64,000 nucleotides of DNA, taken from NCBI GenBank assembly GCA_002104905.1, contig MCFE01000158.1, positions 85,992 to 149,991 of the forward strand, read 5' to 3'. The notes beneath the pieces are model-generated. The model worked only from the letters and a program-made list of their open reading frames with translations. It was not told the origin of the DNA and did not search any database. The DNA comes from Basidiobolus meristosporus CBS 931.73. Lineage: Eukaryota > Fungi > Basidiobolomycota. Within the stretch, counting starts at the first letter, position 1; every line of letters begins with the position of its first letter. The position numbers and the translations under genes are program-made. This document shows positions 35,488-62,124 of the stretch, piece by piece.

Positions 35488-37945
35488 ATGTTGACCTTTG
35501 AGAATAGTTTTTGGACTGCTGACTACCGTTCAGGGATAAACCAGCTGAACGAAAAGCTCGCCCAGGGAAGCATCGAATGCGACGAGATCCTTGGCTTCCT
35601 CAAGGAGAGGGCCGCCATAGAGGAGCAGTACGGCAGCAAGCTCTGCGAACTCGGCAAAAGGAAGAGCAAGAATGGTGGGTTCGCTAAAGATGACGGGGCC
35701 ACCCTGAAGAGAACGTTCGATTCGCTGAAGGGGGAGTGCCTCGAGCTCGGCCAGTTCCACAAACAGAACGCCTCCGACATTCAAGAGCTCGTACTGAAGC
35801 CACTCCAGATCTTTGTCGAGGAACGCAAGGTCGGCCTGAAAGTCAGCAAAGAGAGCATCGAGGCCGCACTGAAACGCTTGGACAAGCAGCGGGCCGAGTT
35901 GTTACGTGCCCAGGAGAATTACATGACCAAGTGCGGAGTTGCTGACTCCCTGGAGAAGCAAGAGGCCGATAAGCCCAGTAGACGGCTTTCCATTCAAGAC
36001 CTTCAACTCCGACTGGAGCTCATCACCAACACCCTGGGGAACCTGACCTTCACCGAAGAGGAGTTCAAAGAATTTCTGCAGAGGATCCAAACGGAGATCC
36101 CAACTCAGGAGGTCCGTTATCCATTCCTCGGGTTATACAAAGGCTTGATCTCTGGGGAATCCGTCGCAGCGTGGCTTCGCGAGCATTACAACCTAGAAAG
36201 TGACGAGCAGGTCGAGCAGGTCGGCCAGGCCCTTATCGATCAAGGGTTTTTGAAACTGGTCGGCCGCGGGAACAAGTTCACCATCAAATCCAACTCGTAC
36301 TACCAATGGAAAAAGCTCTACCAAGACCAAGGTTCCCCGTTGGAGAAAGCTCGGCTAGAGGCGGAGGAGGCGGACGCAGCCTACAAGCAGCTTGCCAAGT
36401 CGGTAGACAAGTCCCGAATGTCGGCCGAGCGGACTCTGATGAGTTATCTTGGAAACATGGAGCGTAACGAGGTCAACAGGATCGTCGCCATCAAGGCCGC
36501 GTTCTTGAGCTTTGCCGCCACCTTCTCCACCGTGATCTCAACGTATATCTCGATGAACGAGAGAACGCAGCTCTACTTCGAGACCCTTAAGCCCGAGAAC
36601 GACATCACCTTCATGATCGAGCAACACGGGACTGGTTACTTCAACCCCAAGCCCGTCGTCTACGAGAACTTCTATTACGGATCCGTTAAAGACCAAATTT
36701 ACGGTGTCCCTCTCGAGGAACAAGCGCGCCTTTCGAAGAACCACATCCCACTCATCATTGCCAAATGCCTGAGCGCGCTCACCAAGGGCTATGGGGAAAT
36801 GCCCTACGTGGAGCGGAGGGGTATCTGGATCACCGATGTACCCTTGGCCACCATTCATAGTCTGAAAAGAAGCATCAACCAAGGGTGCCAGGTAACCCTG
36901 AAGCAGCTGCGAGAATATGACCTCAAGACCATTGTTGGCGCGCTCAAGCTCTACTTGTTGGAGCTCCCGGAATGCTTGTGTACCTCGGAGCTGTACGATG
37001 CCGTGAAGGCCATCTATGCGCCAGGTGAGTTGCCCCGAGAGTCGTCTTTGAATGGATTCATACTAACCATCTGACCTGAAGTTCCCCTACCCGATAGAGA
37101 TGACGACGAAGAACGAGCCAGACTAGGCGCGATTCAGAACCTGCTCACCGCTCTACCGCCCGCCAACAAGCGCAGTTTGAAGGCCATCATGGGCCATCTC
37201 AACCAGTGAGTAGCTTTTGCTTTGTAGTTGTCGGCTGGGCATCGGACTGATCAGTTGCAGGTTGCTGCAGGACATGTCTCCCGAGGAGCTGTTCATCCCG
37301 GAGATATGCCATAACCTTGGACATACCATTTTGAGACCACGCGCGGAGACCCCGGTGACATTCCACGACAGACATCCACAGAAGCTCGTGAAGGACATGA
37401 TATGCCATTACCAGGAGATCTTCGACTCGATGAATCTGACCAACATCAGCTACGATGACGAGGACTCGGCCGAGCCGAGTACGGATTCCAAGAAGGTCAG
37501 CCCACAGCTGGAGGAGGAAGTGGAGGATGAGGACGAGAGCGAGCTGCTGTTCTCAGATCCCTCCTCCGACTTGGACAAAGAAAGTACTCACTCGGAGGAG
37601 CCTGCGGCGGAACCCAAGCCCCTTCAGGAGAGCAACCACGTAGAGCACGAAGCAAGCGCACCTGCGAGTCCCGTGATAGAGGTCGAGCCTAGTCAAATCG
37701 ATAGCGCACCCAAAGAGGATACCCCCATCGCAGAAGAGAAGGCGGCGATCATCGAGGAACAACCAGCACAACCGATCGAGGAAAAAGTGAGCGCACCAGC
37801 GACAGTCCCAGATGCACCCAAGTCGTCCACCAAGGAGGAGGTCAATAGCCCCGCTCCTACCCCCACACCGGCCAAGCCTGTAGTGGAGAAGGTGGACGAC
37901 GACGATTTGGATCCCTTCTTCCAGGACGAGGACGAGGAGGACTGA
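35488..37945 (+). CDS. F-BAR + DEP + RhoGAP protein (Rgd2-like)
   Basis: FENSFW..D...GI..L..L..G..EC.EIL.F..ERA.IEE.YG (FCH), GQALIDQGFL (DEP), YGVPL..P.II.KC and ALKLYLLELPE (RhoGAP), acidic tail. Confidence 0.92.
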
Positions 37946-41167: not shown

Positions 41168-44008
41168 TCACATGAACAAATACACCAAGGAGCCCACAAA
41201 CTTGACAAGGGAGAGCATGGCGACCGCCCAGAAAATGAAGGTCAGATAGAAGTGCTTCTGATCCACTACTCTGGGGGTGGTCAGGTTGAACCAGGAGCTT
41301 GTCTCGATCGCCTGGAACACCAGGATCAACACCACATTCGAGAAGATCCACGACAAGACAGTGCGAGTGCGAAACAGCCGGTAGTAGTCCTCTCTCTTGG
41401 TTTTGGCGTCGCGTTTGGCCTTTTCGGCCTTGGTGGGCACCGACAGGTCCTTCACCGTCTCCTCGTAAATCGCGTTGATATCCTGTCGCTGGCTGGGCAC
41501 CGCCAGGGCTGCCACCTCTTTTCCTTGCTTGGTGGTCTGGACCATGACCTTGCCGAGATCACCCGCCGAGCCGTTGTCCCCTTTCGTGCCCCAAGAAACA
41601 TCGTGAGTGTTGCAGAAAGCATACACCATCAGGATGTTCACGTAGGAGGGAAAGATGAACAAGTACTGCACGAACGAGGTGACCATGTGCCACGGGTCCA
41701 GATACAAAATCGAGGAGACGAGATACAGCCCGTATGTCGAGGCCAGCGCGATCAGGATGTTCATGCTCTCCTTGGCGAACGGGTGGGCCAGCAGCTTGCG
41801 GACGTTGTTGGGATCGGAGAAATACATGTAGAGGCTGAATCCCACCGTGTACATCATGATCCCCATGATGAACGCGAAGATGAACACGCACAGCAGATAG
41901 ACCGCTTTGGAGCCCTGAGGCCGGTTGCCCAGCGACAGAACGAACTGAACAATGATCCCCAGCAAAAAGATTTGTCTGGCGATCGGATACACGATCCACG
42001 AATATCCATGGAATGGGTCAGGGTTGTAGGGATCGTAGTCGTGGCTGACGGAGCCATCCGGGTTCTTGGGCATCGCTGCATCGGACAAGAAATAGAACGT
42101 CAGGTAGAAGTTCCCCTAACGGAATGAACCGGGGTTAAGACCAGACTGACATGCCCCCCACATTGCACTACTTACCAAGGTGAACCAGCTGAAGAACAGG
42201 GAAATGATGTTGTAGATGAATTGAATAAAGAACAGAAACTTGCGGCATGTGCTGTGCTCAGTCCCGTAGATTTTCATCCAGTGCGCGGTGGCGAAGAATG
42301 CCGCGAACAGCGAACCATTGAGCCAGCGTCTGCGCTGGGATATAAACTCGGACCAGTTGTCAGGGACATCGGTCTCTGCCTTGGCGGCCTTGATAACCAT
42401 TAGCAATCGATATCGAGGCGGCATCGACAATCGAATGTTGGGCCTACCTTCACATATTTCAATACCCATCTGGAGTTTTTCTTGGCCACCAGTTCAAAGC
42501 ATAGTATCCGATCTTCGGCCAGATACATGTTCGCCTCAAATATCCCGCCTGTTGCATCTTCGCCGTGCATGGTTTCCCCTTTGAAGTAGGAAGCTAGCGG
42601 CCCTTCATTTGAGGCGGTGTTCTTCAACGCGGTATAGCGGTACGCGGAGAAAGCGCCGGGCAACACGCTAATATAGCCAAACACACTCTCCAATGGTTTG
42701 TCCAGGATGTTGCTCATCTTGTATTCGAAGTTCTGCGCGGCAACCAGCGGGTTCAGCAGACTTTTGCCTGCGATGCCTAATTCAGCGCAGATCTCTCCAC
42801 ACGCACCACCAACATGTGGGTTGCTGTGGAAAGCTAGTAAGGGTTAGCCATGATCAAGCCAATATCAGGTGCTGTGACCGCTCACCTTTCCACAAATGAT
42901 AGATCGAGGTGTTATGGGGCCTGGTGCCGACATCCAAGAGGATGCAGACGTTGGGATTTAGCAACGGGGAAAATCCATTGAAGAACCAGCGGTGGGAGTT
43001 GAGCTTCTTCTTGTTCTCCTCCTTGAGACAGAACAGGATTTGTGTAGGCATGTAGCTCTTGGCCTGGGATTTCTTGGTGATAGGCTGTACCTGCAAGTTC
43101 TTGTCGATGTAGAGTTGCGTGGTATACTCGTACAGATGGGCGGTGACGCCCTTTCCGTTAACTGAGCTCTGGGCTATCCCATCCTGGTAGACTCCCATGG
43201 CACTCAGTACTTTGAGCACTCGGGGATGAACTTTGGTACGCCCGTCCGCAACGATGCACACCACCACCTTGGTCCACCCCTCTTTCCCCCATACACCATT
43301 CCGATCCTTGCTGCACAGGTGTCGAATATTTTTGATAACTCCGCTGAACGTTTTGATGAATAGGTTCTCATCCTCGTTGTACATGGTCATCACTATAAAG
43401 ATCTCCACAGGCCGACCATAGAGAACCTGGCGTAAGGTATACTTCGAGAACGTGAATTGGTCGGGCTCACAAGTAACTGCTGTGTATCGCATATGGGTGA
43501 ACTCCCTCTGTTCTTTATGTATTGCGGAGGCCAAAACCTTGTCCGGCACTGGGCAATCTAGTACCAAGTTACCACTGGTCAATTCGATGTGCTTGAGGCC
43601 ACGGTGATGATCTTCTACCTGCGATTGAAGCTGGTAAGGATTAACTGCCCACGGGAAGCTATCTTGATGGTGCAGCCGCCTTCGTGGATTCTCTGGCTCT
43701 GGCGGCGTCTGGAAAGGAAGCGTTGGATAGAATTCAGGATAGCCAGGATTTCCTGGGCTCCCAAATAGCTCGTGAGCAGAAAACTCTTGCGGATAAGTGA
43801 ACCGGGGGTCGATGGGGGGCTCCGGGGGATAATAGTACGGTTGCGGATACATTTCATGTGGAGCAGGGTAGGGATATCCAGGCTGTGGATAGGGCAGTAC
43901 GCCAAGATTGCTACGTTCATCCGACGGAATGGGATACTGTGAAGAGTCTTCTGAGTAACTGTGTTGAACATTCGGAGGAATCGAGTCATTATTATAAGGT
44001 CTGTACAT
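41168..44008 (-). CDS. chs: Division-1 chitin synthase (GT2), multi-exon
   Basis: [46 protein letters not shown] and HDVSWGTKG motifs, plus a C-terminal TM region. Confidence 0.97.
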
Positions 44009-44923
44009 TTTTTGGCTGGAATTCAATATAAATCGATCATGAACTATAATAAAAAGGTGGGATTAAGAGGACAGAGAAAGAAAGCCCAAGGTTGGTGAAA
44101 GTGCGAAGGAAAAGTGGAGATGGTCATTCGAAACTAGGAGATTTATTGAGCTAATGTATGTACTCCTCCGGGGAATATTGCCAGTTGTTAATAACCTTAA
44201 TTTTCCTTTTCTGGATGTTGTTTCTCATTTAGGAGTATTTAAGGGGTGGTCTTTAATTCTTGAACCCGTTGACCGTTGTTCATTAGTGCTACTGAGACTT
44301 GGTCCGTACAAAGTGAGGTATCTTTGTTCAATTGAGTTAGGCTGGTTTTGGATGGGTCAGACAGTAGTTTAGGTTGACAAATAGTTGGAAGTGGTTCCGT
44401 TTTTGCTTTACTACGACATTGTACCGGTTTTGCTTCGATTTGATTAACATCGCAATCTCTCACCTCGATCTTTTTTTTTTCGATCTCGTTTGTTTTTCAA
44501 CCTTCCGAAATCACTGGAATCCCACAAATCCCCACAGCGACCACAATCAAACAAATACGAATTGATTTCTCTGTTGATTCTTCACTTACATACAGATCCG
44601 CTTACCATAAGCTAACCTTTGCATCTATGGTTTGTTTGCAAATGGCGCGGACCGAGATGAACAACTGAATTATAATACATCTTGTTTGGTTTCCTTCGGG
44701 TTATCGACATAAACTTGATGTTTCGCTTTTTCAGGACATACCTTGTATTAATATTCAAATTTGTTTATTGAAGCATTATGATGCTATCATAAATTTTTCG
44801 AAACTAAAATTATCATGACATTCTATTTTGCAAGCCAAATTCAATCTGGGTGGTTTTAGCGTTCTATGGTATATCTAAGAGGGGTATGCATAGGTTGGTG
44901 TATAGGCTCAGAAATTGATTTTT

Positions 44924-45457
44924 CTACTCGTGCCAAATGAAGGATACTCCTTCCCCAGGCCAGAAGTTGACATAAGTGGTCACATATGGACCACCATATC
45001 CGTTGATGTAGTAGTTCCAGTCACTGGTGTACACACTTCCGTCGTCATTGATGCTCTCCACCACTGCGACATGTCCGTACTCGTCACAGCCTTGGTAGCC
45101 TGGCTGGATGGCAATGATTGAGGGGACGCGGGGCTCATCAGATACAACCCATCCTGGGGTGTTCATGGCACTCTCCGGCCAGGTCTTGGCATTGCCCCAC
45201 CACTGAGTGTGGTAGCAGGTGAGTTGGTAGTAGCGAGCATCGGCCCAGTCGGTACACTGACCATTGTCGAAGCGGAACTGGAGAGGACATTCATTGTAGA
45301 GCTCACTAAGCACAGTGAGGTTGTCTTGTACGTCAGCGGGCTTGGTGCAGTTAGATGGGCTCTGAGTGGCAGCAGCAGGCAATGCGTGAATACCGGAGCT
45401 CAAGAAGCTAGTTGTGGCCAAGACGGCAGCAGAAAAAAGCGAGGCGATTCTGACCAT
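44924..45457 (-). CDS. Secreted CHAP-domain amidase/peptidase, copy 1
   Basis: Signal peptide, GQCT (Cys68), WGNA..W, GHVAVVE (His129), SDWN. Intronless, with upstream TATAAAT at 45511-45517. Confidence 0.92.
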   Translation of the reverse strand: MVRIASLFSAAVLATTSFLSSGIHALPAAATQSPSNCTKPADVQDNLTVLSELYNECPLQFRFDNGQCTDWADARYYQLTCYHTQWWGNAKTWPESAMNTPGWVVSDEPRVPSIIAIQPGYQGCDEYGHVAVVESINDDGSVYTSDWNYYINGYGGPYVTTYVNFWPGEGVSFIWHE

Positions 45458-46013
45458 TGTTTGTAAGTGAGGAGACTTGAAGATGTCGAATTAGCCACCA
45501 GTCGGTTCTTATTTATACATGGATTTTCACCAGAAAATGAGGTTGTCAAGCTCAATCCAACGGTCATTGGATCGAAATCTACTTACCTAATTTAACCTAG
45601 TACTTCTGGATACCTGCCAAAGAAGGACGGCTTGTTTACTAATATATTCCTCAGATTTCTGGATTGAATCTGGACTGTATTTCCCAAATGTAGTAATTAC
45701 TACTTCTGATCGTAAAATAAGATATTACATGAATATCATCCGCATTCTTGTTGATTCCTTGATCGGTAAAAAAGATAATAAATGATTTGTTTTTCTTGCT
45801 ACAATGCTTTACCTTTATATCATCAAGTTCAGTTCAAATTTTATACATTGGATGTCACTTTTGTTTGCTCGTCGGACGTTTACGAGGAGATTCAAAATAA
45901 ATCAATAGGCTTATAGATATTTTTATTTTTATATGCAAATTGGGTTTGTATGGTATCAAAGCTTTTCAATTTCACGGTATTTTAAGTGGTATTTTCAAGA
46001 TAAATTGACTATT

Positions 46014-46547
46014 CTATTCATGCCAAATGAAGGATACTCCTTCCCCAGGCCAGAAGTTGACATAAGTGGTCACATATGGACCACCATATCCGTTGACGTA
46101 GTAGTTCCAGTCACTGGTGTACACACTTCCGTCGTCATTGATGCTCTCCACCACTGCGACATGTCCGTACTCATCACAGCCTTGGTAGCCTGGCTGGATG
46201 GCAATGATTGAGGGGACGCGGGGCTCATCAGATACAACCCATCCTGGGGTGTTCATAGCACTCTCCGGCCAGGTCTTAGCATTTCCCCACCACTGAGTGT
46301 GGTAGCAGGTGAGTTGGTAGTAGCGAGCATCTGCCCAGTCGGTACACTGACCATTGTCGAAGCGGAACTGAAGAGGACATTCATTGTAGAGCTCACTGAG
46401 CACAGTGAGGTTGTCTTGTACGTCAGCGGGCTTGGTGCAGTTAGATGGGCTCTGAGTGGCAGCAGCAGGCAATGCGAGGATACCGGAGCTCAAGAAGCTA
46501 GTTGTGGCCAAGACGGCAGCAGAGAAAAGCGAGGCGATTCTGACCAT
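46014..46547 (-). CDS. Secreted CHAP-domain amidase/peptidase, copy 2
   Basis: Differs from copy 1 only at H24L and I151V. TATAAAT at 46601-46607. Confidence 0.92.
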   Translation of the reverse strand: MVRIASLFSAAVLATTSFLSSGILALPAAATQSPSNCTKPADVQDNLTVLSELYNECPLQFRFDNGQCTDWADARYYQLTCYHTQWWGNAKTWPESAMNTPGWVVSDEPRVPSIIAIQPGYQGCDEYGHVAVVESINDDGSVYTSDWNYYVNGYGGPYVTTYVNFWPGEGVSFIWHE

Positions 46548-47139
46548 TGTTTGTAAGTGAGGAGACTTGAAGATGTCGAATTAGCCACCAGTCGGTTCTT
46601 ATTTATACATGGATTTTCACCAGAAAATGAGGTTGTCAAGCTCAATCCAACATCTATTGGATCGAAATCGACATCCCAAATACGGGCTAGTGTTCATGGG
46701 CTCCAACCATTCTAAGGAATCTATCAGATGCCTGGGATTTCTTTTGTTAGATTTCAAGAATGACAATCACTTATAATAAAGGATATTGATAGGACAGCCT
46801 TTTTGCCACAATTCTTACGATACTTTTTGAGATAAGCCGATTCAAATCGGTAAGTAGTGGGTGGAGTTATATTTATCAGTTGGGTTTAGTTGATGCTTGT
46901 AATAATTATGGTGTAGTTCTCTTAAAGGTATGCCATTTTGAGTTAATCATCTGGACACTGATCGTTGAATAAGTAATACTTAGTATTGGTACTTTATATT
47001 GATCCAAAAACACAATGAAAGTTTCGATTCAAAGATTTTATTGGTATATGTACGATTTTATCTAAATGGTATTTGCACTCAGTTGGGTATCAAAGAAAGG
47101 TGTGTATAGGTTGGTGCATAGATTCAGAAAATGATTTTT

Positions 47140-47673
47140 CTACTCGTGCCAGATGAAGGATACTCCTTCCCCGGGCCAGAAGTTGACATAAGTGGTCACA
47201 TATGGACCACCATATCCGTTGACGTAGTAGTTCCAGTCGCTGGTGTACACACTTCCGTCGTCATTGATGCTTTCCACCACTGCGACATGTCCGTACTCAT
47301 CACAGCCTTGGTAGCCTGGCTGGATGGCAATGATTGAGGGGACGCGGGGCTCATCAGATACAACCCATCCTGGGGTGTTCATAGCACTCTCCGGCCAGGT
47401 CTTGGCATTGCCCCACCACTGAGTGTGGTAGCAGGTGAGTTGGTAGTAGCGAGCATCTGCCCAGTCGGTACACTGACCATTGTCGAAGCGGAACTGGAGA
47501 GGACATTCATTGTAGAGCTCACTGAGCACGGTGAGGTTGTCTTGTACGTCAGCGGGCTTGGTGCAGTTAGATGGGCTCTGAGTGGCAGCAGCAGGCAATG
47601 CGAGGATACCGGAGCTCAAGAAGCTAGTTGTGGCCAAGACGGCAGCAGAGAAAAGCGAGCCGAATTTAACCAT
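47140..47673 (-). CDS. Secreted CHAP-domain amidase/peptidase, copy 3
   Basis: Differs from copy 2 only at residues 3-5. TATAAAT at 47722-47728. Confidence 0.92.
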   Translation of the reverse strand: MVKFGSLFSAAVLATTSFLSSGILALPAAATQSPSNCTKPADVQDNLTVLSELYNECPLQFRFDNGQCTDWADARYYQLTCYHTQWWGNAKTWPESAMNTPGWVVSDEPRVPSIIAIQPGYQGCDEYGHVAVVESINDDGSVYTSDWNYYVNGYGGPYVTTYVNFWPGEGVSFIWHE

Positions 47674-49041
47674 TTTGTTGTGTGGATTTTTAGATGCTGA
47701 TCAGGTGCCACATTGAACAGTATTTATACCACATCTAACATATCATACGGTTTCCATAAATCCAATCCCCTACCAGAATCAGCTCCATGTTTCAGGACTG
47801 CGTACAAATTTAGAATGTCAATCCTGGTATTCTCTAGTTCGGAGCTCATGACCGTCGTTACCATATATGGAGCCTAACGTTACAACACTTTCCAATCTTG
47901 ATGGAGCCTAGCCTTTGGTAGTTAGCAAACGATAACGACACTAAAATGAGAAGCTATTGAATTGCTAATATCCAATCACAATAAAAGCCTGTGCTCAGGG
48001 AAAATTTGGCTATATGTGATGATCTATTGGTTCAATAGTGGATCTTACCAATTGACTACGGCAAGGGTCACTACAAAGAATAGTGGCACTATAGAATAAA
48101 ACAGTATTTCCTAAGGATGTTCGTAAACATTCATAACCACAAAAGGGAAGAAAAGAAAAGTTTCAATCAATAGAGTCAGGCCCTATCAAACTCTTATTCA
48201 AAGCTTCCTACCTGGAGAGCACTAATAGTCCCAAGTCTGCCCGCTCAAGGAATGCGTCACAAGGTTCATCGTAATTCGGTAAATATGACAAAGGTAGGGC
48301 TGTTTTCGAACCTTTTGTACCAATGTTTATTTAGGCGTGGTATCGCCTCGAACGATAGGTTGTCACGATGCAATCTAGATTCATGATCTGACTCAGGAAA
48401 TTTCCGCATCTGAAAGATAGCGCAGAACGTGGAAAAACCTCGAAAGTGATGGTATAGTCTTTATGAGCTCTGTAGAATGTTATCAGTTCGATAACGTAGT
48501 ATTCTTCCGAAACTCTTCAAATATAGAATATATAGCGCTAATATAAGATTTGATAACATTTACTTCCAAGCTAAGCCACACAGAAGGGGAATACTGTTCG
48601 TGTAGCTATCTGCCAAACATTTCAGCCAGAGTACCTGTTATTTGTTGCAACCTTCGTCGCCACTATTGCTTTATTCCTTTCCTTTGGCTTTTTTCCATCA
48701 TCACGATTCTTCGTTTTTTGTAAAGAAACTATACGATTCACGGGATCGGTGCTATGACCTAAGCAACAAACTATCCTCTACTCCTGGCTCAAAGCAGAAG
48801 CTTCTTTAATACCGCTTTTTCATGATATCTGCAGTAATGAATTTCAATACATGAAGTGCGTAGTAATGTCTTGAGTAATCTGCATGTGTCGTCTTTGTGG
48901 CTCCTGATATGCAAAAGCAGGCGCTGTAAGTGTAATCACAATATTCATCATATTTATTATTAAAATTGACATGTCAAAGTATTGCTCACTAAGCTACCGA
49001 GTTATCTTTGGACAAAGGTTCATTATTTTTCGAGAAGTAAA

Positions 49042-49446
49042 TTAGCATCGATTGACTGTCAATTGACCCTTGCTAACATCGTTGACGTTGGGGAAATCGA
49101 CTGGGACACTACCGCACTGGTTGCAACCATGGTCGGCTAAGAAGCCAAGAAGTTGACAGGCCTTCCACTTGGGAATAGTGCGGTCTCCCATATTCTGAGT
49201 GAAAGCACAGAAGTTACGGCGAACAGGGAAGTTGGTGATCTGCTCGTTGACGGTGATGATGTGTTGGCCGTTGCTGAATTGCTGATTTTGATCACCGCCG
49301 CATAACTGTCTCATTTCAGCGATGACATGCCCGAAGTTGCCAACAAAGTTACAGTCACTTGAACCTCTGCAGTTGATACCGAGCCCATTTGTGGTACCAA
49401 TCGAGAGAGCGAAGATGGCAGCAGCTGTAGCAATTGATTGTTTCAT
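49042..49446 (-). CDS. KP4-family killer-toxin-like secreted protein, 134 aa
   Basis: Signal peptide MKQSIATAAAIFALSIGTTNG, then LGINCRGSS..C, HGC..CGSVP and NDVSKGQLTVN, matching the Ustilago KP4 signature. Intronless. Confidence 0.93.
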   Translation of the reverse strand: MKQSIATAAAIFALSIGTTNGLGINCRGSSDCNFVGNFGHVIAEMRQLCGGDQNQQFSNGQHIITVNEQITNFPVRRNFCAFTQNMGDRTIPKWKACQLLGFLADHGCNQCGSVPVDFPNVNDVSKGQLTVNRC

Positions 49447-50620
49447 GATTCGGACCGAAAGTAAAATGCGGCTTTGAGCAATGCTTTGGACAATGTCTGT
49501 TGTTGCCATTTATACTGTTGCTTGTTTGAGACCATGCTGGGACACAACCCCCGCTTCCGCACTGCTTATCACAGGGGACAAGTTTTTTTGCCCCATCCTC
49601 CTGTTGTGCTATATTACTAAATGCCCTGTGGTACCCTGTGGCCTGTTTATGCTGTATCCAGTCTACTGTGCCGTTCACCTGCTTTATCAATCAAAGCTTG
49701 TTGCCAAATGGTTATTGTTGGGAATGATAGCTTCACCACTGCCGCGTGGAGATTTCTGCTAATAGCCCAAAAGGTGGAGCATTGATGCTTACTATATTTT
49801 TTCCCTTTTTTTCTAAATCCAGCAACTCTAGAGGTGTGACAATCACAAATGAAAAACAACCCAATGTGGTCTCCAAATTCGCTATTCGAGGCTATTTTCC
49901 CGAAACTTATTAATCGTCAATGAGTACCAGTACGCTCTTACCATCGGCCCGAGAAAGGTTTTTTGAACTATAATTCCACTTTTACCTCATAGCGATATCC
50001 TCTCATCAATTCAGGGTAATGGAAAGAGTGTGAGCAAGCCTTGCTAGTCACATCAAGTTATTCGCTTGGCTTAGTAGCAAACAGTCAACGCGAAACAGAG
50101 GTTCTCAAAGACACAGCCAATGTCTTAGGTTTCTCAGTATAAAGTACATCAATTGCCTCATCATCCGATATTCCTAGTAATTGCATTGTAAGTTATGGTG
50201 TCCACCTTTGCGTACTTGCACAGGTGATTATATTATGGGAAGAGCGGTTGTTTCTTCCAAGTTGACCGGTACAACATACTAACCTGTCAACCTAATCTTT
50301 TTGGCAATTGTCCCCACAGGTTGCATCAAAGCGCAACACCAAAAGCATATTGAGTAAGGATTGCCTGATGGGAGAAGTTACCACGTTTCAACATTCGACT
50401 ATTATGGCTGGGATTTGCTCCAATTTTATAGCGCATAAAAGATTGCTTTTGCGATTTGAGCATTCGACCCACCGAAGTAGGAATAGATATGCACACGATA
50501 ATTGACCATTCCTTTCCTGGTGCCGCTTGTGACTAGTTTGGAAGTGGGATGCCAAAAGTACCAAATCAGCATTTCTTCTAATACCTCATTGGTCAAGAAT
50601 GGAGGAAAGCTAACGAGAAA

Positions 50621-51063
50621 TCTGTTAACCGTTAATTGGCCTTTTCCAGCATCTTCGACATTGGGACACCACACTTACGTGGCTCTGAACCATGTCTGTT
50701 GATGACATTCATACTGTAGCTCGTTTGAGACCACACAATGCCAGATTACAAGTTTCTCGTCCCATCCCCCTGTGGTAACCCCATTCCTTACATGCCGCAT
50801 CCAGTCTACAGTGCCACTCACCTCATTATCCAATGAGCTTTGCACCTAAATATATATAATGCTAAGATATCTTGATGTTTTCCAAAAGCAGGCTTACAAT
50901 ACCTTTGCCACTTTACTTCCAAATCTAGCACCATCGGAGGAGTGACAATCATTGATCCAAAGCAACCCAACAGGAACTATAGTTCCACCATTAGAAGCGA
51001 TTTTCCCGAGACTTATTAATACCGACTAACCTGGCACCGATTACGCTCTTACCATCGGCTCGG
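50621..51063 (-). pseudogene. Internally deleted KP4 paralog
   Basis: PNVEDAGKGQLTVNR (50665-50621) matches the KP4 C-terminus. Region 50683-51063 is a diverged copy of the KP4 upstream region 49488-49950. Confidence 0.75.
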
Positions 51064-52049: not shown

Positions 52050-53400
52050 GTGTAGCTGAGGGGAATTTGTAGGTAAGTTAATAAGAAGTGATGATAGTTC
52101 TTCAGTGCTCAAGACACTATTCAGTGGGAAGGGGGGTAGCAAGGGGGTAAGAATGATTTGTGAACAACATTAATGAGGGGAATATGATAAGGATTGATAT
52201 TCATCATGAAGGGAGTGTGCTGCTTCAGATATTGCTGCCAAAGGTCTGTCATGTACTTCAGGTAGGCCAGCTTGGGTTTTTTGACTGCAGAATATAGTGA
52301 GCAAACTTCTTGACTTCAGGATCTCCAAGTATAGTTCTCCAGCAGGAGCCAGGTGTAGTGTGGTGTGTTCTCTTCCAGGCCTTAATCAGTGGGTTGTTGC
52401 AGTGGTGAAGTCTGAGATATAATCTGGTTCTAAGGCAGAGTAGTCTGATCTAATAGGGCATAAACCCAAGAGCACCAAGAATAGCATTTCTGTAAGGGCA
52501 TTCAGGCAGTTGAGGCACTAGGGATGTAATGCACCAGACTGCAAATTTGTCAAGCTTAGTGAAGTCTCTAGAGGTAAGAGAGAGAGTGGTAAGCCAAATT
52601 CCAGGACAGGGAAGACAAACTGCTTGAGTAGAAGGAGGCAGCTGGGAGCTGAAGTCATATGAGGAGTAACAGCCAGTAGCTTGTGGAGTGCTTGTCTTGC
52701 CAGGATAATCCTCCTCTTCAGGTGTGCTCCAGAGTCTAGTCCAATAAGAGGGAAAGAAAAGCCAAGATATGTAGCCAAAACTTGAGCAGGTAGAGTGCAG
52801 TTCTCCAAGTTGATAGGACAGCCCAAGGTTACTGTCTTTGGAATTGGAAGCTGGAGATTATTCTTCTGCAGATGCTGGTGGATGGTCTGGGAGTCTTGTT
52901 GCACACTGGAGGAGGATATTCTGATGTCATCAGCAAAGAGAGTGACCAGGTAGTCAGCTGAGAGTCTTGGGAAGTCATTCAGGAAGATGGCAAACAGTAT
53001 AGGACCAAGCACAGAGCCTTGAGCCACTCCATTAGGAACTGAGAACACTGGTGATTGCTATCTTGGGTGCAGAATTCTTTCTTGTGGATCCAGAAACAGA
53101 GACCTGACAAGGAGGGTGAGAGATGTATTGGAGAAGCATTGCAACTTAGACCAAAGCAGATTTCTGTCAACTGAATCAAAGGCCTTAGTAATATCAGACA
53201 GAGCAGAGGGATACTTGCACTGAAGTGAGTGATCTTGGCTAAGTATGACTACATATTCCAAGGAGAGGCCAGGAGCAAAGCCAAATTGTGCAGGGTGAAA
53301 CTTGAGGGAGTCAGAGTAGAGCTCTTGAGCAAGCAGAAGCTCAAACACCTTTCTGCAGGTGGGCAGCAGAGATATTGGCCTGTAGGAGCTAGGATCCAGG
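52050..53400 (-). mobile_element. Non-LTR (LINE) retrotransposon RT relic
   Basis: QFGF, DITKAFDSV, GVAQGSVLGP.LF and LFADD motifs with stops. Confidence 0.9.
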
Positions 53401-54097
53401 TGTTGTGCATCAACATTTAAAACTTGGCCAATTTACTCCGTTTGAAAATCTAGTACCCTAACTGATTTTCCCTAACCCAATCATAACAAATCCCAGTTAC
53501 AGTTTATTTTATCCCACCTCAGAATCTATTTTTAGCTATCACACCTGATCTATTTTCAAATGGTCATTACGTTATCAACATAGCTGCCAAGCCTTCCCAG
53601 GTGATTAGTCATCTGAGATCTATTCAACCACTGTGCAGTTGCCAAGACATCAGTTGATTGATGATGTAATTTTCATTTATCTTATGCACCTATGAACACC
53701 CAAATTGATATCAATCAATCCAGTCCCTTGGCGCTTACTAATTCAACTTGATCAGAAAAGTATAAATAAAGTTTACTGAACCTTTTGGTTTAGTGTGTGT
53801 CTCAACAAAATTAAGATTCTGTCTCAGCAACAATAAAGAATCCAACAATTCCGTTCTAGTCTCTATCCAAGCCTAGTATATCTAGCACTCCAAAGAACAC
53901 CAAGCCTAGCCTACCTAGCAAACAAATATCATTGTCTTTATAGCCAACCCAGCTATATCCAAGACCAATATTAGATCAGAATCTTTCTGCTAATATTTCC
54001 GCCACTCTGTGACAATTCTAAGATTCTGCACTTAATTGTCCCTTTGGTTCAGTTAAACCATTCAAGAGTTTTATTACACTTTCTCTTGGATACAACA
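53401..54097 (+). repeat. Family-B solo LTR
   Basis: TGTTG...CAACA, near-identical to 20644-21340. Flanks CCAGG and CTCAG do not form a TSD. Confidence 0.9.
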
Positions 54098-54454
54098 CTC
54101 AGTTTCAGTTTTGACAATTCTGGATGCAAGATCACTGATCACAAATGTTTGACAAAACATCTAAGATTGTTAATCCAATACTTACAAAAAAATTTTTTAA
54201 ACGCGACTTAAAAGTTTTTTTATTTTCAAACCAAATTTAAACCTGATAACCAACTTGCGCATGTAAAATTTGGATAAATGTTTAGCCAAACCTATATAAT
54301 TTCTAATTCTACATTTACAGATACGTTTTATTTTTTAATTCGCAAAATTTTTTTCCAATTTTTTTTATCCCAAACCCAAAATCGCGTTTAAAAACTTTTT
54401 ACGCAATAAAAAACTCAAAACAAAACTTTTGATTTAACAAAACTATTTCCAGAA

Positions 54455-54750
54455 ACTTTTGTCTACTCATGGAAAACTTTTTTAAAACTTAAACATGATA
54501 TTTATTTCTGCCAAAATATGTCCCAAACTTGGACAGGACATTTTATTTACCCATGAATAAAACTTTTTTCAAACTTAAAACTATCTTATTTACTTATGCC
54601 AAAACCCATTTTAAACTCAGACAAACCATTTTATTTACCCATGAATAAAACTTTTTTCAGACTTAAAACTATCTTATTTACTTATGCCAAAACATATTTC
54701 AAACTTAACCCATACATTTTATTCACCCATGGAAAAACTTTCTCAGACCC
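54455..54750. repeat. 88-bp AT-rich tandem repeat, about 3.4 copies
   Basis: CATTTTATTTACCCATG units at 54539, 54627 and 54715, with a diverged unit before them. Confidence 0.85.
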
Positions 54751-55072
54751 GCAAAAAATATTTTTTAAAAATTTGCTGAGAAACATAAAAAATTATTAAA
54801 AAACAGAAAAATTGGCAAATAAAAAAAATATAAACTCTTAACCGTATATCTACATTATTAATTAAATTCTTTTCATGCAATTAACCCACAGTTATAAAAA
54901 ATAATAGTTATATTGTCCGCAAAAGGCAAACCCATCCTAACACCAAATATTAACCTGATAATGTCCATTACCGCTAACCAAAATATTTACACAAAAATAT
55001 ATCTCATATATACACGGAATAACCATAACTATTAACCAGAATATTTACGCTGAAAAAATAACCCCACTTATC

Positions 55073-56137
55073 TCACATACCAATATATTTTTTCACCTTA
55101 CCCACCAAATTATTATACGTATATGGAATCAGATAATTTTTAACCAACGGAACAACACCATCAGAATTCTCGATTAATGCGTTAATCTCACATGAAATCA
55201 GATTTATTTGATCCCCAGGCAACATATTTTTGGACAAAAGTCTTATATTTGATATTAACATATCTCCATTGACATAATTTTTGGCAATCTGTCCATTTAA
55301 AATATCTTCGTCAGAATATTTTTTTCCAAGAAACTCTTTGTCAGAATATTTTTTTCCAAGAAACTCTTCGTCAGAATATTTTTTTCCAAGAAACTCTTCG
55401 CCTAAAATTTGGTTGCAAGAAAAATCTCTATCATCAGAATTTTCGCAAAAAACATGTTCACCCAAAGTTTGTTCATATAAGATACTATTTGCTAGTTTTG
55501 TATTCTTGAAACCTTTGGAGTTTGATGCAATTATTTGTTTGTTTAACGTTTGTTTTGTAATATCATCTTTTGACACAATTATATCCTCTTGAATGATAGA
55601 TTTGGTGGGTAATTGTGTTATAATATTATTTGGCGCAATTGTAGTTTCTTGAATAACAGATTTTTCGCGAGATTATATCATAGTATTATCTGGCACAATG
55701 ATATCTTCTTGATAAAAAGTTACGTTAGACGCCTGTGTTATAGTATTATCATCCATACAATCACCATCCTGATATTTTTCTTCGCTTGATAAATTTTTTG
55801 TCCCAGAACAAATATTTTTAGAAATCTTTTCGTCGTTAAAAGTTTTGCAAATCCCATCCTTATCATCTAATACGGTTTCATGAAGATGGCGCAAATGGTA
55901 TCCGCAAAATTTTTGATCTTTTGCTTGATATTTGCATCTTTGTCCCTTGTTTTTACCAGTTGTTAATTTTGCCATGCACTGAAATGTACGTGGGACATTT
56001 GTATAATACGCATTAAGAAACGCATACTGAGATTCGGTTAAAGCCTTAAATAGCTTGCATACTAAAATTTCTGATTGATCTTGTATCTTCTGTCAAAAGT
56101 CGTCACAAAAAATTTGTATTAACAAATCCGAGTTCAT
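55073..56137 (-). pseudogene. AT-rich intronless gene of about 354 codons with a C-x8-KG-x2-C-x9-C-x2-H-type motif and two in-frame stops
   Basis: One frame runs from ATG 56137 through TGA (56095-56093) and TAA (55675-55673) to 55073, merging two track ORFs. It contains QCMAKLTTGKNKGQRCKYQAKDQKFCGYH. Confidence 0.7.
55311..55400. repeat. 30-bp coding tandem repeat x3 (EEFLGKKYSD)
   Basis: TCAGAATATTTTTTTCCAAGAAACTCTT(C/T)G three times. Confidence 0.95.
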
Positions 56138-56214
56138 GTAATTTGAAAATGAAAGCCTTTTTATGAATATGAAACAGGATCGAGACCCAGTCAATTTTAG
56201 TTTTTGCTATGGGA

Positions 56215-57013
56215 TTAGGAGTAGCAATCTTGATATCATCTGCATAGAGAGTTAGTAGTGGATAGGGAGAGTCTGGTGAGGGGCCTTTTGGAAATAAAGG
56301 AAAGTCATGTAGGAATATCACAAATAATAAGGGACCTAGTACAGATCCTTGGACTACTCCATTTGGAACCTCATAAGTCTCTGATGTACAACTTGGATGC
56401 AAAATTTTGGCTGAGTTCTCACAAAATAGAGAACGTACAAGAAGGGTCATTGGTAGTGTGGTAACTGCTAATAGCTTTCTCCAAAGCAGAGCTCTGTCCA
56501 CAGAGTCAAAGGCTTTGGTAATGTCAAACAGAATGGTTGGCAATGAGAATTGAAGTGAATGATCATGGCTTAGCACCACAGCCATATCCATGGAGAGTTT
56601 GGGCAAGAAGCCAAACTGAGAAGGATGGAATGGATATAGTTGAGATTGCAAGGATCTTGCTATTATAAGCTCAAAGATTTTCCGGCAGGTTGGTAGGAGT
56701 GAAACTGGCCGGTAAGAACCTGGGAGTGAGTGTTTCCCCTTCCCTTTGTATAAGGGTATTACATTTGCCTGTGACCAGGCCTTTGGGGTAGTCAATTGTT
56801 GGGCACAGATAGAGTAGAATGGGAGAAGTAAGTGACTCATTTTGGAGTAGCACACCTGGAGTAGATTGTAGGTAATCAAGTCATGTCCAGGTGCAGTATT
56901 TGCAGGAAGCTTCTTTAAAATTTTCTCCAGAAGCTTTGCTGAAACCACAATTGGAGATGTTGTACTGCTAGATATGTCACCAGTATGGTAGAAAGGAGGA
57001 GTGGGATGCACGG
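56215..57013 (-). mobile_element. LINE RT fragment (same family as 52050-53400), cut by an LTR element
   Basis: APGHDLI, SYRPVSLL, QFGF, DITKAFDSV, GVVQGSVLGP and YADD motifs. Confidence 0.9.
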
Positions 57014-58084
57014 TGTGGTGGTGTATAAGTCCAAGGGAGAGATACGTCCAACACTTCTCAAGTGTTTTGTGTGTGGGGTGTTCACTGGGTGCAATAACCT
57101 CTGGCAAAAGCTTGCTAGGAATACTTGGGTTCTGTCTCTAATCTAATGTGAAGGGGAATAAAGCCACAAGCTTGTCAAGGGAAAACTATTGAGCTACAAT
57201 CCCCAACTTAGTTGGCGTCTTAACAAAAGTATGTGCTGGGTTCAGCGTCCTTTGAGATGACAATGTACTAAAGCTTCCAAAGTCAAAACAACTGTAAACT
57301 CCACCAGCAGGGACTTGATAAGAATGCAGCTGTGGTCAATAGTTACAAAGACAGAAAAGTATCTTTGCCTGTACAAGAACAAACTTGGGAAAGAATCAAA
57401 TATAATAAAAGATACCTACTCTGAGTATTCCTCACAAGTAGTGCCTCCAAGGTCAGTTGGCTGTCAGCGCGGTGTCCTGGGAGTGTCCTGTGGTCTAGGG
57501 TTGGAAGTTCAGGTAGCAGCAGGTAGCAGTGATCACACTAATTAACAAGTCGGTATATTGATAAAAGGGATGATGATTTATTGTTGAGGGATAGCCTCCC
57601 TTATATACTTTTCTCACTGGCTAAGTGATTACTAATCATGGTGTTCCAGAAGGTTCTGGAGATCAATAGAAATCTTAATGACATCAGAATGACCTAAGAA
57701 TGTTCTAAGTAGGTGCCGGAAGGTTCTAAGAGGCACAGCACATCCAACCAATCAGGAATCAGTATTCTGAAACCTATGTAACATGGGGATACCATATATG
57801 GTATGGAAATGGTAGGGATGGTGACACGGGCTGATCATGTGTCACGGGTACTGGCGCGGGTACTTGCCTAATATAGAAGTACTTATAGCTAGTAATCTTA
57901 CATAAAGTGAGGGGTAACTTATGCAATAAGGTAAGCAGGTGTGATAGTCAACTGGCTTATGGGATAGTACTGATTGGGTAAGACAAATGGGATAAAACTA
58001 AAATAAGTGTAGTAGAGATATAGGGAAGTAGAAAATAAGGGAATGAGCACATCTGTCAGTGGGTGTCACTGTCACCCCACTACA
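57014..58084 (-). repeat. 3' LTR (1071 bp)
   Basis: On the minus strand TGTAGTGG...CCACCACA, preceded by PPT GAGAGGGGGGTGGA. Confidence 0.93.
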
Positions 58085-58123
58085 TCCACCCCCCTCTCAG
58101 CTTTGAACTTGGGTCAAAGCAAA

Positions 58124-61100
58124 CTAATCTTGATGTGCAAAATTCCTATGCTTGAATAACTTAAGTCAATTTCCAGCAACTGGTGCTCTCAACTGGGTGT
58201 TGTCAAGCTCAGATATGTAATAACTTCCATTTCCAATCACTTTGGAAATGAGGTAGGGGCCAGTCCATTTGTTGTCAAACTTCCGACTCCATTGCTTGTC
58301 CAAGGTAGAATCATAGAGTAATACTGGGTCTCCTAGTGATAGTGGTTTTGGTCTTGTTGGGTGTGATTTGTCAAAGGGCACCTTGTTCTTTAGTCGTGTA
58401 TGCTTAAGTTGTTCAGCAGCTCTGCTGATATTCAAGTCATGGTGATCAAGTTGCTGTATGCGAGTTGCAAGGAGGTCTTCAGTCTGCATATTGGATCTCC
58501 AATTCAATGAGTTCCAAGTGACTGTGTTTAACTCAACTGGTAGTATGCAGTCATGTCCATAGAGTAGCTTGAATGGCGATAATCCAGTTGTCCTCTTAGT
58601 AGTAATTCTATCTGCCCAGAGTGCTAGATGTAATTGCTGTGGCCACAGTGTTGTGTTATTCTCACAGGTCTTGACAAGAGAGTTCACCAATGGTCCATGT
58701 CCTCTCTCTATCATTCCATTGGCTTGAGGGTGGTAAGCAGTTGTAAAAGCAATGTGTATCTTGTACTTTGAGCACAACTCCTGGATCATTTGGGATGTCA
58801 TCTCTCCTCTGTCAGCAACAAACTGTTGGATGCAGCCAAATCTGCAGATGATGTCTTCAAGTATAAATCTCCATATGGTATGGCTCTTGTTGTTGGGCAA
58901 GGCTCGAGCCTCTGCCCATCCACTAAGGTCATCTCTAGCAACAATCAAGTACTTTTTTGATCCAGCTGTTGGCATGTGGACAAGGTCGATACCAACCTTT
59001 TGCCATTGACAGATTGTGTAAGTAGGATGCAGTGGTTCTTCATAACGCTTTGAGGATCTCTTCTGGCAGGCTACACATGACTCAACAAAGTGTTGGATAT
59101 CATAGTACATGTTTTCCCAGTAGTACCTCTGAGCTGTAGTATTGTATGTGGCTTCTTGTCCTCTATGTCCTCCTGGTTCTCCTTGGTGGATACTTGTCAT
59201 GATGTTCAGTTGCTCTTGAGGGGTAGTGACTACTCTTCTTGGCATAAGTCCAGGTTTCACTCGCTTAAAGAGAAGATCATCTTTAAGATAGTAGTGGTGT
59301 GCCTTCTTCCTGAGTTTTCTAAACTCCTGAATATCCATCCAACTAGGTTTCTTAAGTGTCCTTAGATATTCCTTGATAAGACTCCAGGTAGTTCTCTCTT
59401 GGTCTTTGATGGCAATCTGTTGGATCTCTGCATCAATAATATCATCAAAGTGAGGGTCCAAGTCTTCAAATAATTGTGGTCCCTTCCTGGAGAGTGCATC
59501 AGCCACAACATTTGTCTTGCCAGGGATATGTTTGACCTCAAAGTCAAACATTTTCAGCCATGCCATCCATTGGTTTGTGGCATCATCAAGTAGGTCAGGC
59601 TTGTTGATCATTCCTATCAGTGGCTTGGCATCTGTCTCCAGGATAAAATGTGTCATGTAGAGTTGTGACTTCAGTTTCCTCAGCATCTTCACAACTCCTA
59701 GTAGTTCTCTCTTAATCTGTGAGTATCTTTGTTCTCTAGGAGAGAATAGGCAGCTCTCATATCTGCAGGCATAGCGGTTGCCATCTTCATCATCTTGTCC
59801 AAGTAGTGCTCCAGCTCCTATGGGGCTTGCATCCACTGTCAAAATAGGTGGGCATTCAGTGTTTTGATAGTCAAGAGGTCTCAGAACTGGTGGAGATACT
59901 AAGGCCTCTTTCAGTAATTGCATGGCTTCTTCTTGCTCTTCTCCCCAGATAAATGGGGTGTTCTTTCTCTGTAGTCAGTAAATTGGTTCTGCTATCTCAG
60001 AAAATCTTGGGATCCAGATCCTAAAGAACCCACAAGCAGCCACAAAGCCACAAGCTTGTGTGAGATTTGTGGGGGTAGGCCAGTTGCATATCTTTTGTGT
60101 CTTGGAGTCTCCAGGTGAACGACCAAAGGTGTTGCATTTTTGTCCAACAATGGATATCTCTGATACACCAAAGCTGCTTTTCTCACCACTGATGGTGAGT
60201 CCAGCTTCTTCAATGGCTCCTAATATGGCATCATTGTCTGCAATATGGTCATAGACAAACTTTCTTACTCCAGGCATAACTTCAGTGGTGTCCCGGAATT
60301 TTGATCCTTTGATGCCTATGTCATCCACAAAGACAGCAAGTTTCTCAGGTATAAACTGATACAGCACATTTACCATGCATCTCTGGAACTGAGCCACGGA
60401 GTTTGTAGCCCCTTGGCTGAGTCTTGTCATCCTTAACAGTCCAAATGGTGTCTGAAGTGCAAACATATCTCTTGATGTCTCATCAAGGGGGATCTGGTCA
60501 TATCCTGAGTAGAGATCATATGTTGAGTAGATGGAGTGGCCACTAAAGCTTTCTGCAAAGTCATCAATAGATGGGGTATAGCAGCATCTCTGATAGTGAC
60601 AGCATTTGCAGGTTGCATGTCTTGAATGAATCGGAGCTTTCCATTCTTCTTTTTGGTCACAAACCATCTGTTAGCATAGGGTCCATGGCAAGGTTCTAGG
60701 ATACCAGCTTCTATCTTCTTCTTAAGTAGGTCATGCACATCAGCTTGGAGTCCTCTGGGCAGTGGGTAAGGCTTAAATGACCAGGGTGTGTGGGGCACTG
60801 TATGAATCTTGATGGGTTTTTCAACCAATGTCTTTAAGAGTCCCATCTCCTTGTCATTATATGAGAAGACCTTATCATGTCTTTTCAAGGTCTCCTTGAA
60901 TAATAGTATCTCCTCTGGTGTTAGGTTTCCATCACCAATGATAAGTTGCTTAAGTCTCTCAGGTGTAAGTCGTATATCATCTGGTGTTTTTTCTGGTGGT
61001 CTAATGTAATCAGCAGGTCAAGATCCATCAGTCAGTGGGGTAAGTGATGGTCTAATCTTCTGTTCTACTGTCTTGTATTTTGTTTGAACCATAGCTGTTT

Positions 61101-62124
61101 GCTCCTGTATACCTAATGAGCAGCTCCAAATGTTGGGGTGTATATTGTCAGGCTCTTCATCTTCTTCCATAACAAGATGTGCCTTCTGGCAAGCAGTATG
61201 TGTCCTCTTATTGTTGGGTGTTACACCACAGAAGGTTGACTGTAGTCCTGGGTTGGATCCTTGTATGGTGTACCATACTGACCCATTGGAATAGTTGGTA
61301 GTTGTAGCCTTAGTACTGGTTTCCCATGGTCTACCTAGCAGAAGGTCAAAGTTTGCCTTCTGGCAGATGAAGAGGGGAAGCCAGACCTTGATTCCTTGTA
61401 CCTCAATAGGAAACTTGTGTACTACACCATAGAGTGGACTAGATCCTGAGTTTGCATCAGTCATGTTCCATCCAATATCTCTATCAACAGGCAGTAGCTC
61501 CTTGCTTTTAAGTGTCTTCCAGAAGTCTAGCGGCATAACACAAATCTCTGAGCCACTGTCAATATGGCAGTCAACAGGGTCATCATATATATACCCTTTC
61601 ACCACAGCAGTTGCAACTGAGTAAAAGGTCTTATATTCAGTAGTGTTGTCATCCTTTTGGTGGTCTTCATGGTTTGTCTGAATTATATGAGTGTCCATAT
61701 GTTCAACAGCTTGTTGTCTTGTTCTAAGCTGCTCATCAAAGGTCTTCCTAACAGATGGGGATACACTCATGATTTCTCCAACCGACAAAGTGAGGTTCTG
61801 CTTCAGCAGCTTCTCAGTAATCAGTTGAGGGCTTGAGTAGCTTGCTATCTTTGAGGTCATCTGAAAGTGAGGCAATGGATCTTGGGTGGGCAGCATACTA
61901 GGCCTCTTGTCAATAACAACTTCAGGTTCTTCAAATCGTGGTCTTCTAAGGATGGGTTTGGCAGGTTCTTCAGGGAGGTGTCTTTTGGTAGCAAAGGCAT
62001 CAACTTCATATTGTCTGTTGTCAGGGCTGCTTGGATTCACTTTATGAGTCCCAATAGGGGCATCAACAGTAATCTTTCTGGTTGCTGAGTCAGATTTCTG
62101 GAAAAGGGCTCTCATCCCTCCTCT
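58124..62124 (-). pseudogene. pol (PR-RT-RNase H-integrase), disrupted
   Basis: In-frame TGA at 61018-61020, 59975-59977 and 58166-58168, and a 1-bp frameshift near 60573-60576. Confidence 0.92.

Follow-up and report, generated by a model that had tools for sequence, protein, structure and literature searches.

A tandem array of putative secreted CHAP-domain hydrolases of probable Ktedonobacteria-like origin in Basidiobolus meristosporus

We analyzed a 64-kb stretch of DNA (hereafter the window) that forms the end of contig MCFE01000158.1 (149,991 bp) of the fungus Basidiobolus meristosporus CBS 931.73 (assembly GCA_002104905.1). Our subject is an array of three genes in this window that encode small proteins with a CHAP domain. 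The genes are direct repeats, 1090 and 1126 bp apart, and are listed below together with their TATA boxes.

47721-47729, minus strand: TATA box GTATAAATA of copy 3, 48-56 bp upstream of the ATG (motif count, invariant alignment columns)
47140-47673, minus strand: CHAP gene copy 3, 177 amino acids, single exon, first in the direction of transcription (open reading frame, Pfam CHAP, NCBI gene call)
46600-46608, minus strand: TATA box GTATAAATA of copy 2, 53-61 bp upstream of the ATG (motif count, invariant alignment columns)
46014-46547, minus strand: CHAP gene copy 2, 177 amino acids, single exon (open reading frame, Pfam CHAP, NCBI gene call)
45510-45518, minus strand: TATA box GTATAAATA of copy 1, 53-61 bp upstream of the ATG (motif count, invariant alignment columns)
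44924-45457, minus strand: CHAP gene copy 1, 177 amino acids, single exon, last in the direction of transcription (open reading frame, Pfam CHAP, same-length NCBI gene call)

The array and its proteins

A first-pass annotation, made from the DNA letters alone, had described intronless CHAP copies within 44924-47673 with TATA boxes. It had named Cys68 and His129 as catalytic, had pointed to an SDWN motif and had noted that a cell-wall-binding module is lacking. The data presented in this section agree with each of these points. The open reading frames lie exactly at the positions given, and the NCBI annotation of the contig holds three single-exon 534-bp models that are identical to them; the copy 3 protein has an exact match on this contig. 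Public records list the genes as hypothetical or Peptidase C51 domain proteins. The motif GTATAAATA occurs before all three ATGs. It has five matches in the window compared with 0.49 expected, and three of the five sit 48-61 bp upstream of the CHAP start codons.

Two parts can be distinguished in the protein, given here for copy 3.

47599-47673, minus strand: signal-peptide-like N-terminus, codons 1-25 (hydropathy, junction conservation; same layout in copies 1 and 2)
47143-47508, minus strand: CHAP catalytic domain, codons 56-177, with Cys68, His129, Asp146 and Asn148 (AlphaFold2, Foldseek, 2K3A alignment, conservation)

Pfam recognizes CHAP (PF05257; MEROPS C51) over residues 64-148 of all three proteins with 61.5 bits, compared with a gathering score of 26, and finds no other domain in them. 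In NCBIfam, the only matches were partial and covered the CHAP end of staphylococcal amidases and of PcsB. An AlphaFold2 model built from 97 relatives reached block-mean predicted local distance difference test (pLDDT) values of 94-98 over residues 61-177, with 121 residues at pLDDT >=90, and was uncertain for residues 1-55. The modeled domain has a papain-like alpha+beta fold and matched many CHAP structures in Foldseek with a probability of 1.00. All of the best matches were CHAP peptidoglycan hydrolases: the Staphylococcus aureus CHAP amidase 5T1Q (root-mean-square deviation 2.6 A over 115 columns, probability 1.00), and the phage phi812 hub, 2K3A, PcsB and LysK. Glutathionylspermidine (Gsp) amidase was a weak match.

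In the HMMER alignment to the Staphylococcus saprophyticus CHAP structure 2K3A, the GQCT, GHVA and S-x-x-N-Y segments correspond, and D146-W147-N148, from the S145-D146-W147-N148 motif, is aligned with E-M-N. Cys68, His129 and D146-x-N148 fall at the Cys-His-Glu-x-Asn positions that we take to be catalytic in 2K3A. In the AlphaFold2 model, Cys68 opens helix 68-80 and His129 opens strand 129-136. Conservation among the aligned relatives is nearly complete (Cys68 in 95 of 96, His129 in 95 of 96 and Asn148 in 96 of 96). The third catalytic position, residue 146, is Asp or Asn in the family, whereas it is Glu in the staphylococcal and phage enzymes. The latter (2K3A, 5T1Q, phi812 hub 9EUM, LysK CHAPK 4CSH) have the same fold, catalytic order and Pfam family as the array proteins, but identity to them is only 20-31%. 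Many of them also carry extra modules, including SH3b, LysM and amidase domains, whereas the array proteins have none.

The N-terminus of the array proteins is consistent with a signal peptide. It has Lys or Arg at position 3 (Lys in copy 3), a core of hydrophobic residues from about 6 to 24, and the junction Ala25/Leu26-Pro27, with hydropathy values of 1.1-1.9 across residues 1-24 that fall below 0.2 past residue 25. Most of the full-length paralogues in Basidiobolus likewise have A-L-P, or something close to it, after their hydrophobic stretch. This junction resembles a conserved signal-peptidase site, and the proteins probably enter the endoplasmic reticulum and are cleaved after Ala25. The predicted mature protein has a mass of ~17 kDa and an isoelectric point (pI) of 4.2.

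The two sequons (N36-C-T and N46-L-T) and the four cysteines (37, 57, 81 and 124) reported in the first-pass annotation are present in the sequence. The window copies share the set of Cys57, Cys81 and Cys124 with 13 other aligned Basidiobolus proteins. Apart from one further Basidiobolus protein that has Cys124 alone, the aligned fungal and bacterial relatives have none of the three. These relatives carry Gly at position 81 in nearly every case and Ala, Val or Thr at position 124. Cys37 is confined to the closest relatives of the window genes, and an N-x-T sequon at positions 36-38 recurs across the subclade that contains them. These patterns are consistent with adaptation to the secretory pathway, in which the sequons might be glycosylated. 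However, three extra cysteines make an odd number, and disulfide bonds between them are a possibility only. Four other paralogues (P0012, P0014, P0017 and P0030) carry an N-terminal module of ~55 amino acids with 6-7 cysteines, followed by an Asn-rich linker before the CHAP domain. Pfam found nothing in this module in the two that were examined (P0012 and P0017), and the module could be a binding module that was gained in the fungus.

Relatives, selection and concerted evolution

In a word-index search, B. meristosporus and Basidiobolus ranarum came first, with 34 clusters (90% identity), and metagenomic and Ktedonobacteraceae proteins came next. HMMER was also run exhaustively, without an index, against 1.84 billion representatives. 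Among the 950 matches that it yielded at E <=0.001, Basidiobolus held the top ranks, directly followed by Thermogemmatispora and Dictyobacter, both Ktedonobacteria. Among the best 150 of the 950 matches, all traced sources were Entomophthoromycotina or bacterial, and the untraced metagenomic sequences were nearest to Ktedonobacteria/Chloroflexota sequences. Within these 150 matches and the trees described below, the family has a narrow eukaryotic distribution and bacterial nearest relatives.

We also scanned prokaryotes, with one genome for each of 185,579 species. The 56 best loci all belonged to Ktedonobacteria or Chloroflexota, with 44-59% identity over residues 62-177, apart from a longer match with 36%. 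The next hits were in Bifidobacterium, Saccharibacteria and Staphylococcus and had 35-48% identity over shorter stretches and far weaker E-values. The search patterns were derived from the family itself, so the scan supports the HMMER ranking and is not independent of it. With a single protein as the query, the scan found no relative, whereas the alignment-based scan retrieved them. The first-pass annotation had suggested that two segments of the protein resemble CHAP proteins of Ktedonobacteria/Chloroflexi, and both searches bear out this resemblance.

Membrane-anchored CHAP proteins of Ktedonobacteria, such as WP_112429574.1 from Thermogemmatispora tikiterensis and WP_151755742.1 from Dictyobacter vulcani, were the nearest non-fungal relatives in the HMMER search. 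The likeness to Ktedonobacteria lies in the CHAP domain, which is 44-59% identical over ~115 residues, with the blocks VPSII-x-Q, GHVAVVE, DGSVYTS and GVSF-x-W in common. The bacterial proteins are ~300-400 amino acids long. In two Ktedonobacteria proteins read from end to end, an N-terminal region is followed by a single hydrophobic stretch that would span the membrane, then by a long linker and finally by the CHAP domain, which would lie outside the cell. In contrast, the array proteins of 177 amino acids consist of the domain alone behind a short eukaryotic signal peptide and a linker of ~30 residues. With ~55 residues before the domain, the window proteins do not have the membrane-anchored architecture of the bacterial ones and would be descendants of the domain only. 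A further difference from the Ktedonobacteria proteins is the gain of Cys57, Cys81 and Cys124 in the subclade to which the window genes belong.

Of 151 metagenomic domain sequences, 147 were nearest to Ktedonobacteria or Chloroflexota and four were nearest to Basidiobolus, at only 45-56% identity. Three of these four, together with one more sequence, form the sister group of Basidiobolus in the tree; its members come from Entomophthora muscae (n=2), Massospora cicadina (n=1) and one other contig. Wider searching added more E. muscae genes, among them three in tandem (DSO57_1023045-47) on a contig of 260 kb, and one gene from Neoconidiobolus thromboides. The E. muscae gene for P0139 consists of one 945-bp exon, and its product has a long Pro/Ser/Gln-rich N-terminal region that is missing from the Basidiobolus proteins. 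A metagenomic protein of 545 amino acids (P0078) unites an N-terminal Ser/Thr protein kinase with a C-terminal CHAP domain of the Ktedonobacteria type, which is an unusual pairing.

Maximum-likelihood trees were inferred under LG+C20 from alignments of 92 and 69 rows, which are short (120-149 columns). Supports are given as ultrafast bootstrap/Shimodaira-Hasegawa-like approximate likelihood ratio test (SH-aLRT).

All fungal sequences as one clade: 99/94 in the 92-row tree, 99/91 in the 69-row tree
Basidiobolus clade: 93/87 in the 92-row tree, 99/90 in the 69-row tree
Entomophthorales clade: 100/98 in the 92-row tree, 100/98 in the 69-row tree
Fungi plus the Ktedonobacteria type versus the Bifidobacterium/Saccharibacteria outgroup: 100/99 in the 92-row tree

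In the free trees, the fungal clade lies inside the Ktedonobacteria radiation, and the branches concerned are supported at 95/92 and 95/91.

The three window copies differ from one another by 11-12 synonymous and 2-5 non-synonymous changes. The corresponding proportions of differing sites are ~0.10 for synonymous sites (pS) and 0.005-0.012 for non-synonymous sites (pN), and the ratio of non-synonymous to synonymous divergence (dN/dS) within the array is 0.05-0.11. Of the five distinct amino-acid changes, four affect the signal peptide and one, I151V, affects the domain. The same genome contains a second three-copy array, on contig MCFE01000074.1 (185 kb; locus L078). When the CHAP domain is compared across the two arrays, 35-38 synonymous differences stand against one non-synonymous difference (dN/dS 0.004-0.005). 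In comparison with a B. ranarum relative, synonymous sites of the domain have reached saturation, with differences at 56-60 of 75, and dN is 0.04, whereas the first 55 codons are fast-evolving, with a dN of ~0.5. Such strong constraint, confined to the catalytic domain, speaks for a functional enzyme. The first-pass reading, in which differences between the copies are almost all synonymous and the array was amplified under purifying selection, is upheld by these counts.

The near-identity of the three copies is not due to selection alone, as judged from a comparison of the two arrays.

46548-47139, minus strand: spacer X, between copies 3 and 2; homologous to L078 6957-7477 in the second array (78% over 496 bp)
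45458-46013, minus strand: spacer Y, between copies 2 and 1; homologous to L078 7478-8118 in the second array (78% over 546 bp)
Upstream region, window versus L078: 80% over ~557 bp
Spacer X versus spacer Y within the window: 94% over 134 bp only, the proximal promoter
Coding sequences within an array: 95-99% identity (97.6% between copies 1 and 2 of the window)
Coding sequences between the arrays: 88-89% identity

The spacers are common to both arrays, yet the coding sequences group by array. Therefore, tandem duplication came first and duplication of the whole block came later. Afterward, the coding sequences, together with the proximal promoters of copies 1 and 2, were homogenized within each array. 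This is concerted evolution through gene conversion, and conversion also accounts in part for the near-identity of the three copies. The array provides a clean example of concerted evolution in which conversion is limited to the coding sequence and the proximal promoter. In L078, spacers X and Y are fused, with ~85 bp of the 3' end of a CHAP coding sequence between them (~7480-7566), and an extra CHAP copy with its own spacer lies upstream. The L078 counterpart of window copy 2 seems to have been deleted and an extra copy gained upstream.

Proposed history and role of the family

After considering these data together, we think it likely that the array proteins are small, single-domain CHAP cysteine amidases or peptidases of Ktedonobacteria-like origin that are secreted by the fungus and kill or digest bacteria. 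Each gene would be transcribed from its own TATA promoter, and the N-terminal signal would take the protein into the endoplasmic reticulum, where cleavage would probably occur after Ala25. The free CHAP domain would be released outside the hypha. There, Cys68 as the nucleophile, with His129 and Asp146/Asn148, would cut a stem-peptide or cross-bridge bond of bacterial peptidoglycan, leading to the lysis or digestion of bacteria that share the niches of the fungus (soil, litter, and the amphibian and reptile gut). As for the history of the family, we propose that a Ktedonobacteria-like bacterium passed the gene to an ancestor of Entomophthoromycotina and that a eukaryotic signal peptide then took the place of the bacterial cytoplasmic and transmembrane parts. 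Tandem and segmental duplication would have expanded the family in Basidiobolus, with the array kept uniform by gene conversion.

Several observations weigh against this proposal or limit it. An approximately unbiased (AU) test does not reject monophyly of the bacterial ingroup (p = 0.54 and 0.22); for this reason we call the donor Ktedonobacteria-like and name no specific clade within that group. A wall-binding module is absent from the array proteins, and at pI 4.2 their mature form is acidic. Many hydrolases that act from outside the cell differ in these respects, and the potency of the array proteins on intact cells is uncertain. Moreover, CHAP domains also cut amides other than those of peptidoglycan, as in Gsp amidase, the weak structural match mentioned above.

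The first-pass annotation had proposed horizontal transfer from bacteria, followed by amplification. The proposal of a transfer is supported by the rank of Ktedonobacteria directly after the fungal paralogues and by the 100/99 support that joins the fungi with the Ktedonobacteria type. Nesting within a bacterial clade, which it took as support for a transfer, is seen when the trees are unconstrained; as the AU test leaves a sister placement equally acceptable, we do not claim nesting. As an opposing outcome, it had named a broadly distributed, vertically inherited fungal clade. Vertical inheritance does appear to hold within Entomophthoromycotina, but a broad fungal spread was not seen among the best 150 matches. 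A safe statement is that the family is the sister of, or lies within, a CHAP clade otherwise known only from Ktedonobacteria-like bacteria, and that a single entry into an ancestor of Entomophthoromycotina is probable. That the gene moved from a bacterium to a fungus, and not the reverse, follows from the bacterial outgroups, the narrow fungal distribution, the bacterial nature of the presumed substrate and the loss of the bacterial architecture in the fungal genes. Since one fungal clade includes Entomophthora, Massospora and Neoconidiobolus, the transfer would predate Basidiobolus and would have been followed by vertical inheritance. The GC content at third codon positions (GC3) of the three CHAP genes (0.60-0.64) is inside the range of neighboring fungal genes (0.53-0.72), which fits an old transfer.

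Alternatively, more than one transfer might have taken place, with Basidiobolus and Entomophthorales acquiring the gene separately from related bacteria or one fungus passing it to the other. Both groups are monophyletic on long branches, the deep branches are weakly resolved in the short alignment, and Basidiobolus is known for abundant transfers: 806 candidates of bacterial origin, amounting to 5% of the CBS 931.73 genes and mostly without introns, have been described (PMC7466969). However, all fungal sequences form one well-supported clade in two trees, this clade is uninterrupted by bacterial sequences, and Neoconidiobolus groups with Entomophthoraceae, as the species tree predicts. We therefore regard repeated acquisition as very unlikely. 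An artefact, either bacterial contamination or a chimeric assembly, might be suspected for intronless genes of an otherwise bacterial protein family, but it is hardly conceivable here, and we rejected contamination. The array is physically integrated among eukaryotic genes on a 150-kb contig, with a chitin synthase exon (42854-44026) and a KP4 killer-toxin gene (49042-49446) on either side, a gene of the FCH-DEP-RhoGAP type at 35488-37074 and several retrotransposon reading frames in the same window. The paralogous array on the 185-kb contig lies among trypsin, GMC oxidoreductase and MAP65 genes, and independent assemblies of B. ranarum and E. muscae hold homologues on contigs of 260 kb to 1 Mb. 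The TATA boxes, the signal peptides, the host-like GC3 and the fact that no bacterial sequence is more than 59% identical likewise speak against a bacterial contaminant.

A different question is whether genes of the same origin now do another job. The proteins might trim free peptidoglycan fragments, either to scavenge nutrients or to rid an animal host of immune-stimulating muropeptides. Their target might also be an amide bond outside peptidoglycan, in material of the fungus itself or of a host. The missing wall-binding module and the acidic pI would suit such a role, as would the presence of non-peptidoglycan amidases in the CHAP superfamily. Additionally, the family is kept in the obligate insect pathogens Entomophthora and Massospora, for which handling host immunity is a plausible need. 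In contrast, the strong sequence and structure matches are all peptidoglycan hydrolases, and the catalytic domain is still 45-59% identical to bacterial enzymes. The largest expansion is found in Basidiobolus, which lives amid dense bacterial communities (PMC7466969, PMC10964425), and the adjacent KP4 gene fits a locus of secreted antagonistic proteins. We consider this alternative, the main rival to our proposal, rather unlikely. A use of the family as a whole for something other than killing bacteria, such as the clearing of immune-stimulating peptidoglycan fragments in an animal host or the cleavage of non-peptidoglycan amides, is likewise improbable in our judgment. If true, it could explain why the family was retained in obligate insect pathogens and why Cys57, Cys81 and Cys124 were gained jointly, along with a conserved sequon, in a Basidiobolus subclade.

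An antibacterial or digestive role, which we favor, would place the family beside a small number of known cases. Bacterial wall-cutting enzymes have been found in few eukaryotic lineages and were antibacterial weapons where tested. The tick protein Dae2, treated by Chou et al. in 2015, is reportedly one such bacterial-derived hydrolase with antibacterial activity. In Saprolegnia parasitica, a secreted CHAP family of seven has been described (PMC3681718). NlpC/P60 proteins of Trichomonas vaginalis are bacterial-derived, with reported antibacterial activity (PMC6299479), and GH25 lysozymes were transferred across domains, likewise with reported antibacterial activity (PMC4241558). All of these resemble the Basidiobolus array in that an enzyme that cuts bacterial walls became part of a eukaryotic genome, acquired a signal peptide and in many cases was duplicated. 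The present case differs in its recipient (Entomophthoromycotina), its apparent donor (Ktedonobacteria) and its much larger expansion. The Saprolegnia CHAP genes are not among the named sequences of the best 150 HMMER matches, although their relationship to the fungal clade was not specifically searched. The main texts of the Basidiobolus transfer study (PMC7466969), of the E. muscae genome paper and of a transfer survey that covered 44 early-diverging fungi (PMC11291939) make no mention of CHAP.

If our proposal is right, it would add a whole fungal subphylum to the recipients of such enzymes and an unusual apparent donor, the filamentous soil Chloroflexota. With ~20 distinct 90%-identity clusters per genome, the expansion in Basidiobolus is large. 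Basidiobolus is also a gut symbiont whose bacterial interactions are under active study. Since the proteins are small, single-domain and highly conserved, they should be easy to express and assay.

Genomic surroundings of the array

The KP4 gene (49042-49446, minus strand) lies directly upstream of the array, scores 97 bits against Pfam Kp4 and has an NCBI product of 134 amino acids. Its position next to the CHAP genes suggests a locus of secreted antagonistic proteins. A degraded second KP4 copy is found ~1 kb beyond the first (~50426-50674, minus strand), with the open reading frame terminus ...GKGQLTVNRF. In L078, ~100 bp of KP4-like sequence (4141-4238) is retained at the position that matches the KP4 gene of the window. 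The last 12 kb of the contig contain retrotransposon frames (window positions 52518-62976; reverse transcriptase, RNase H, integrase and DUF4100), and GC content is only 29% at 54-56 kb of the window.

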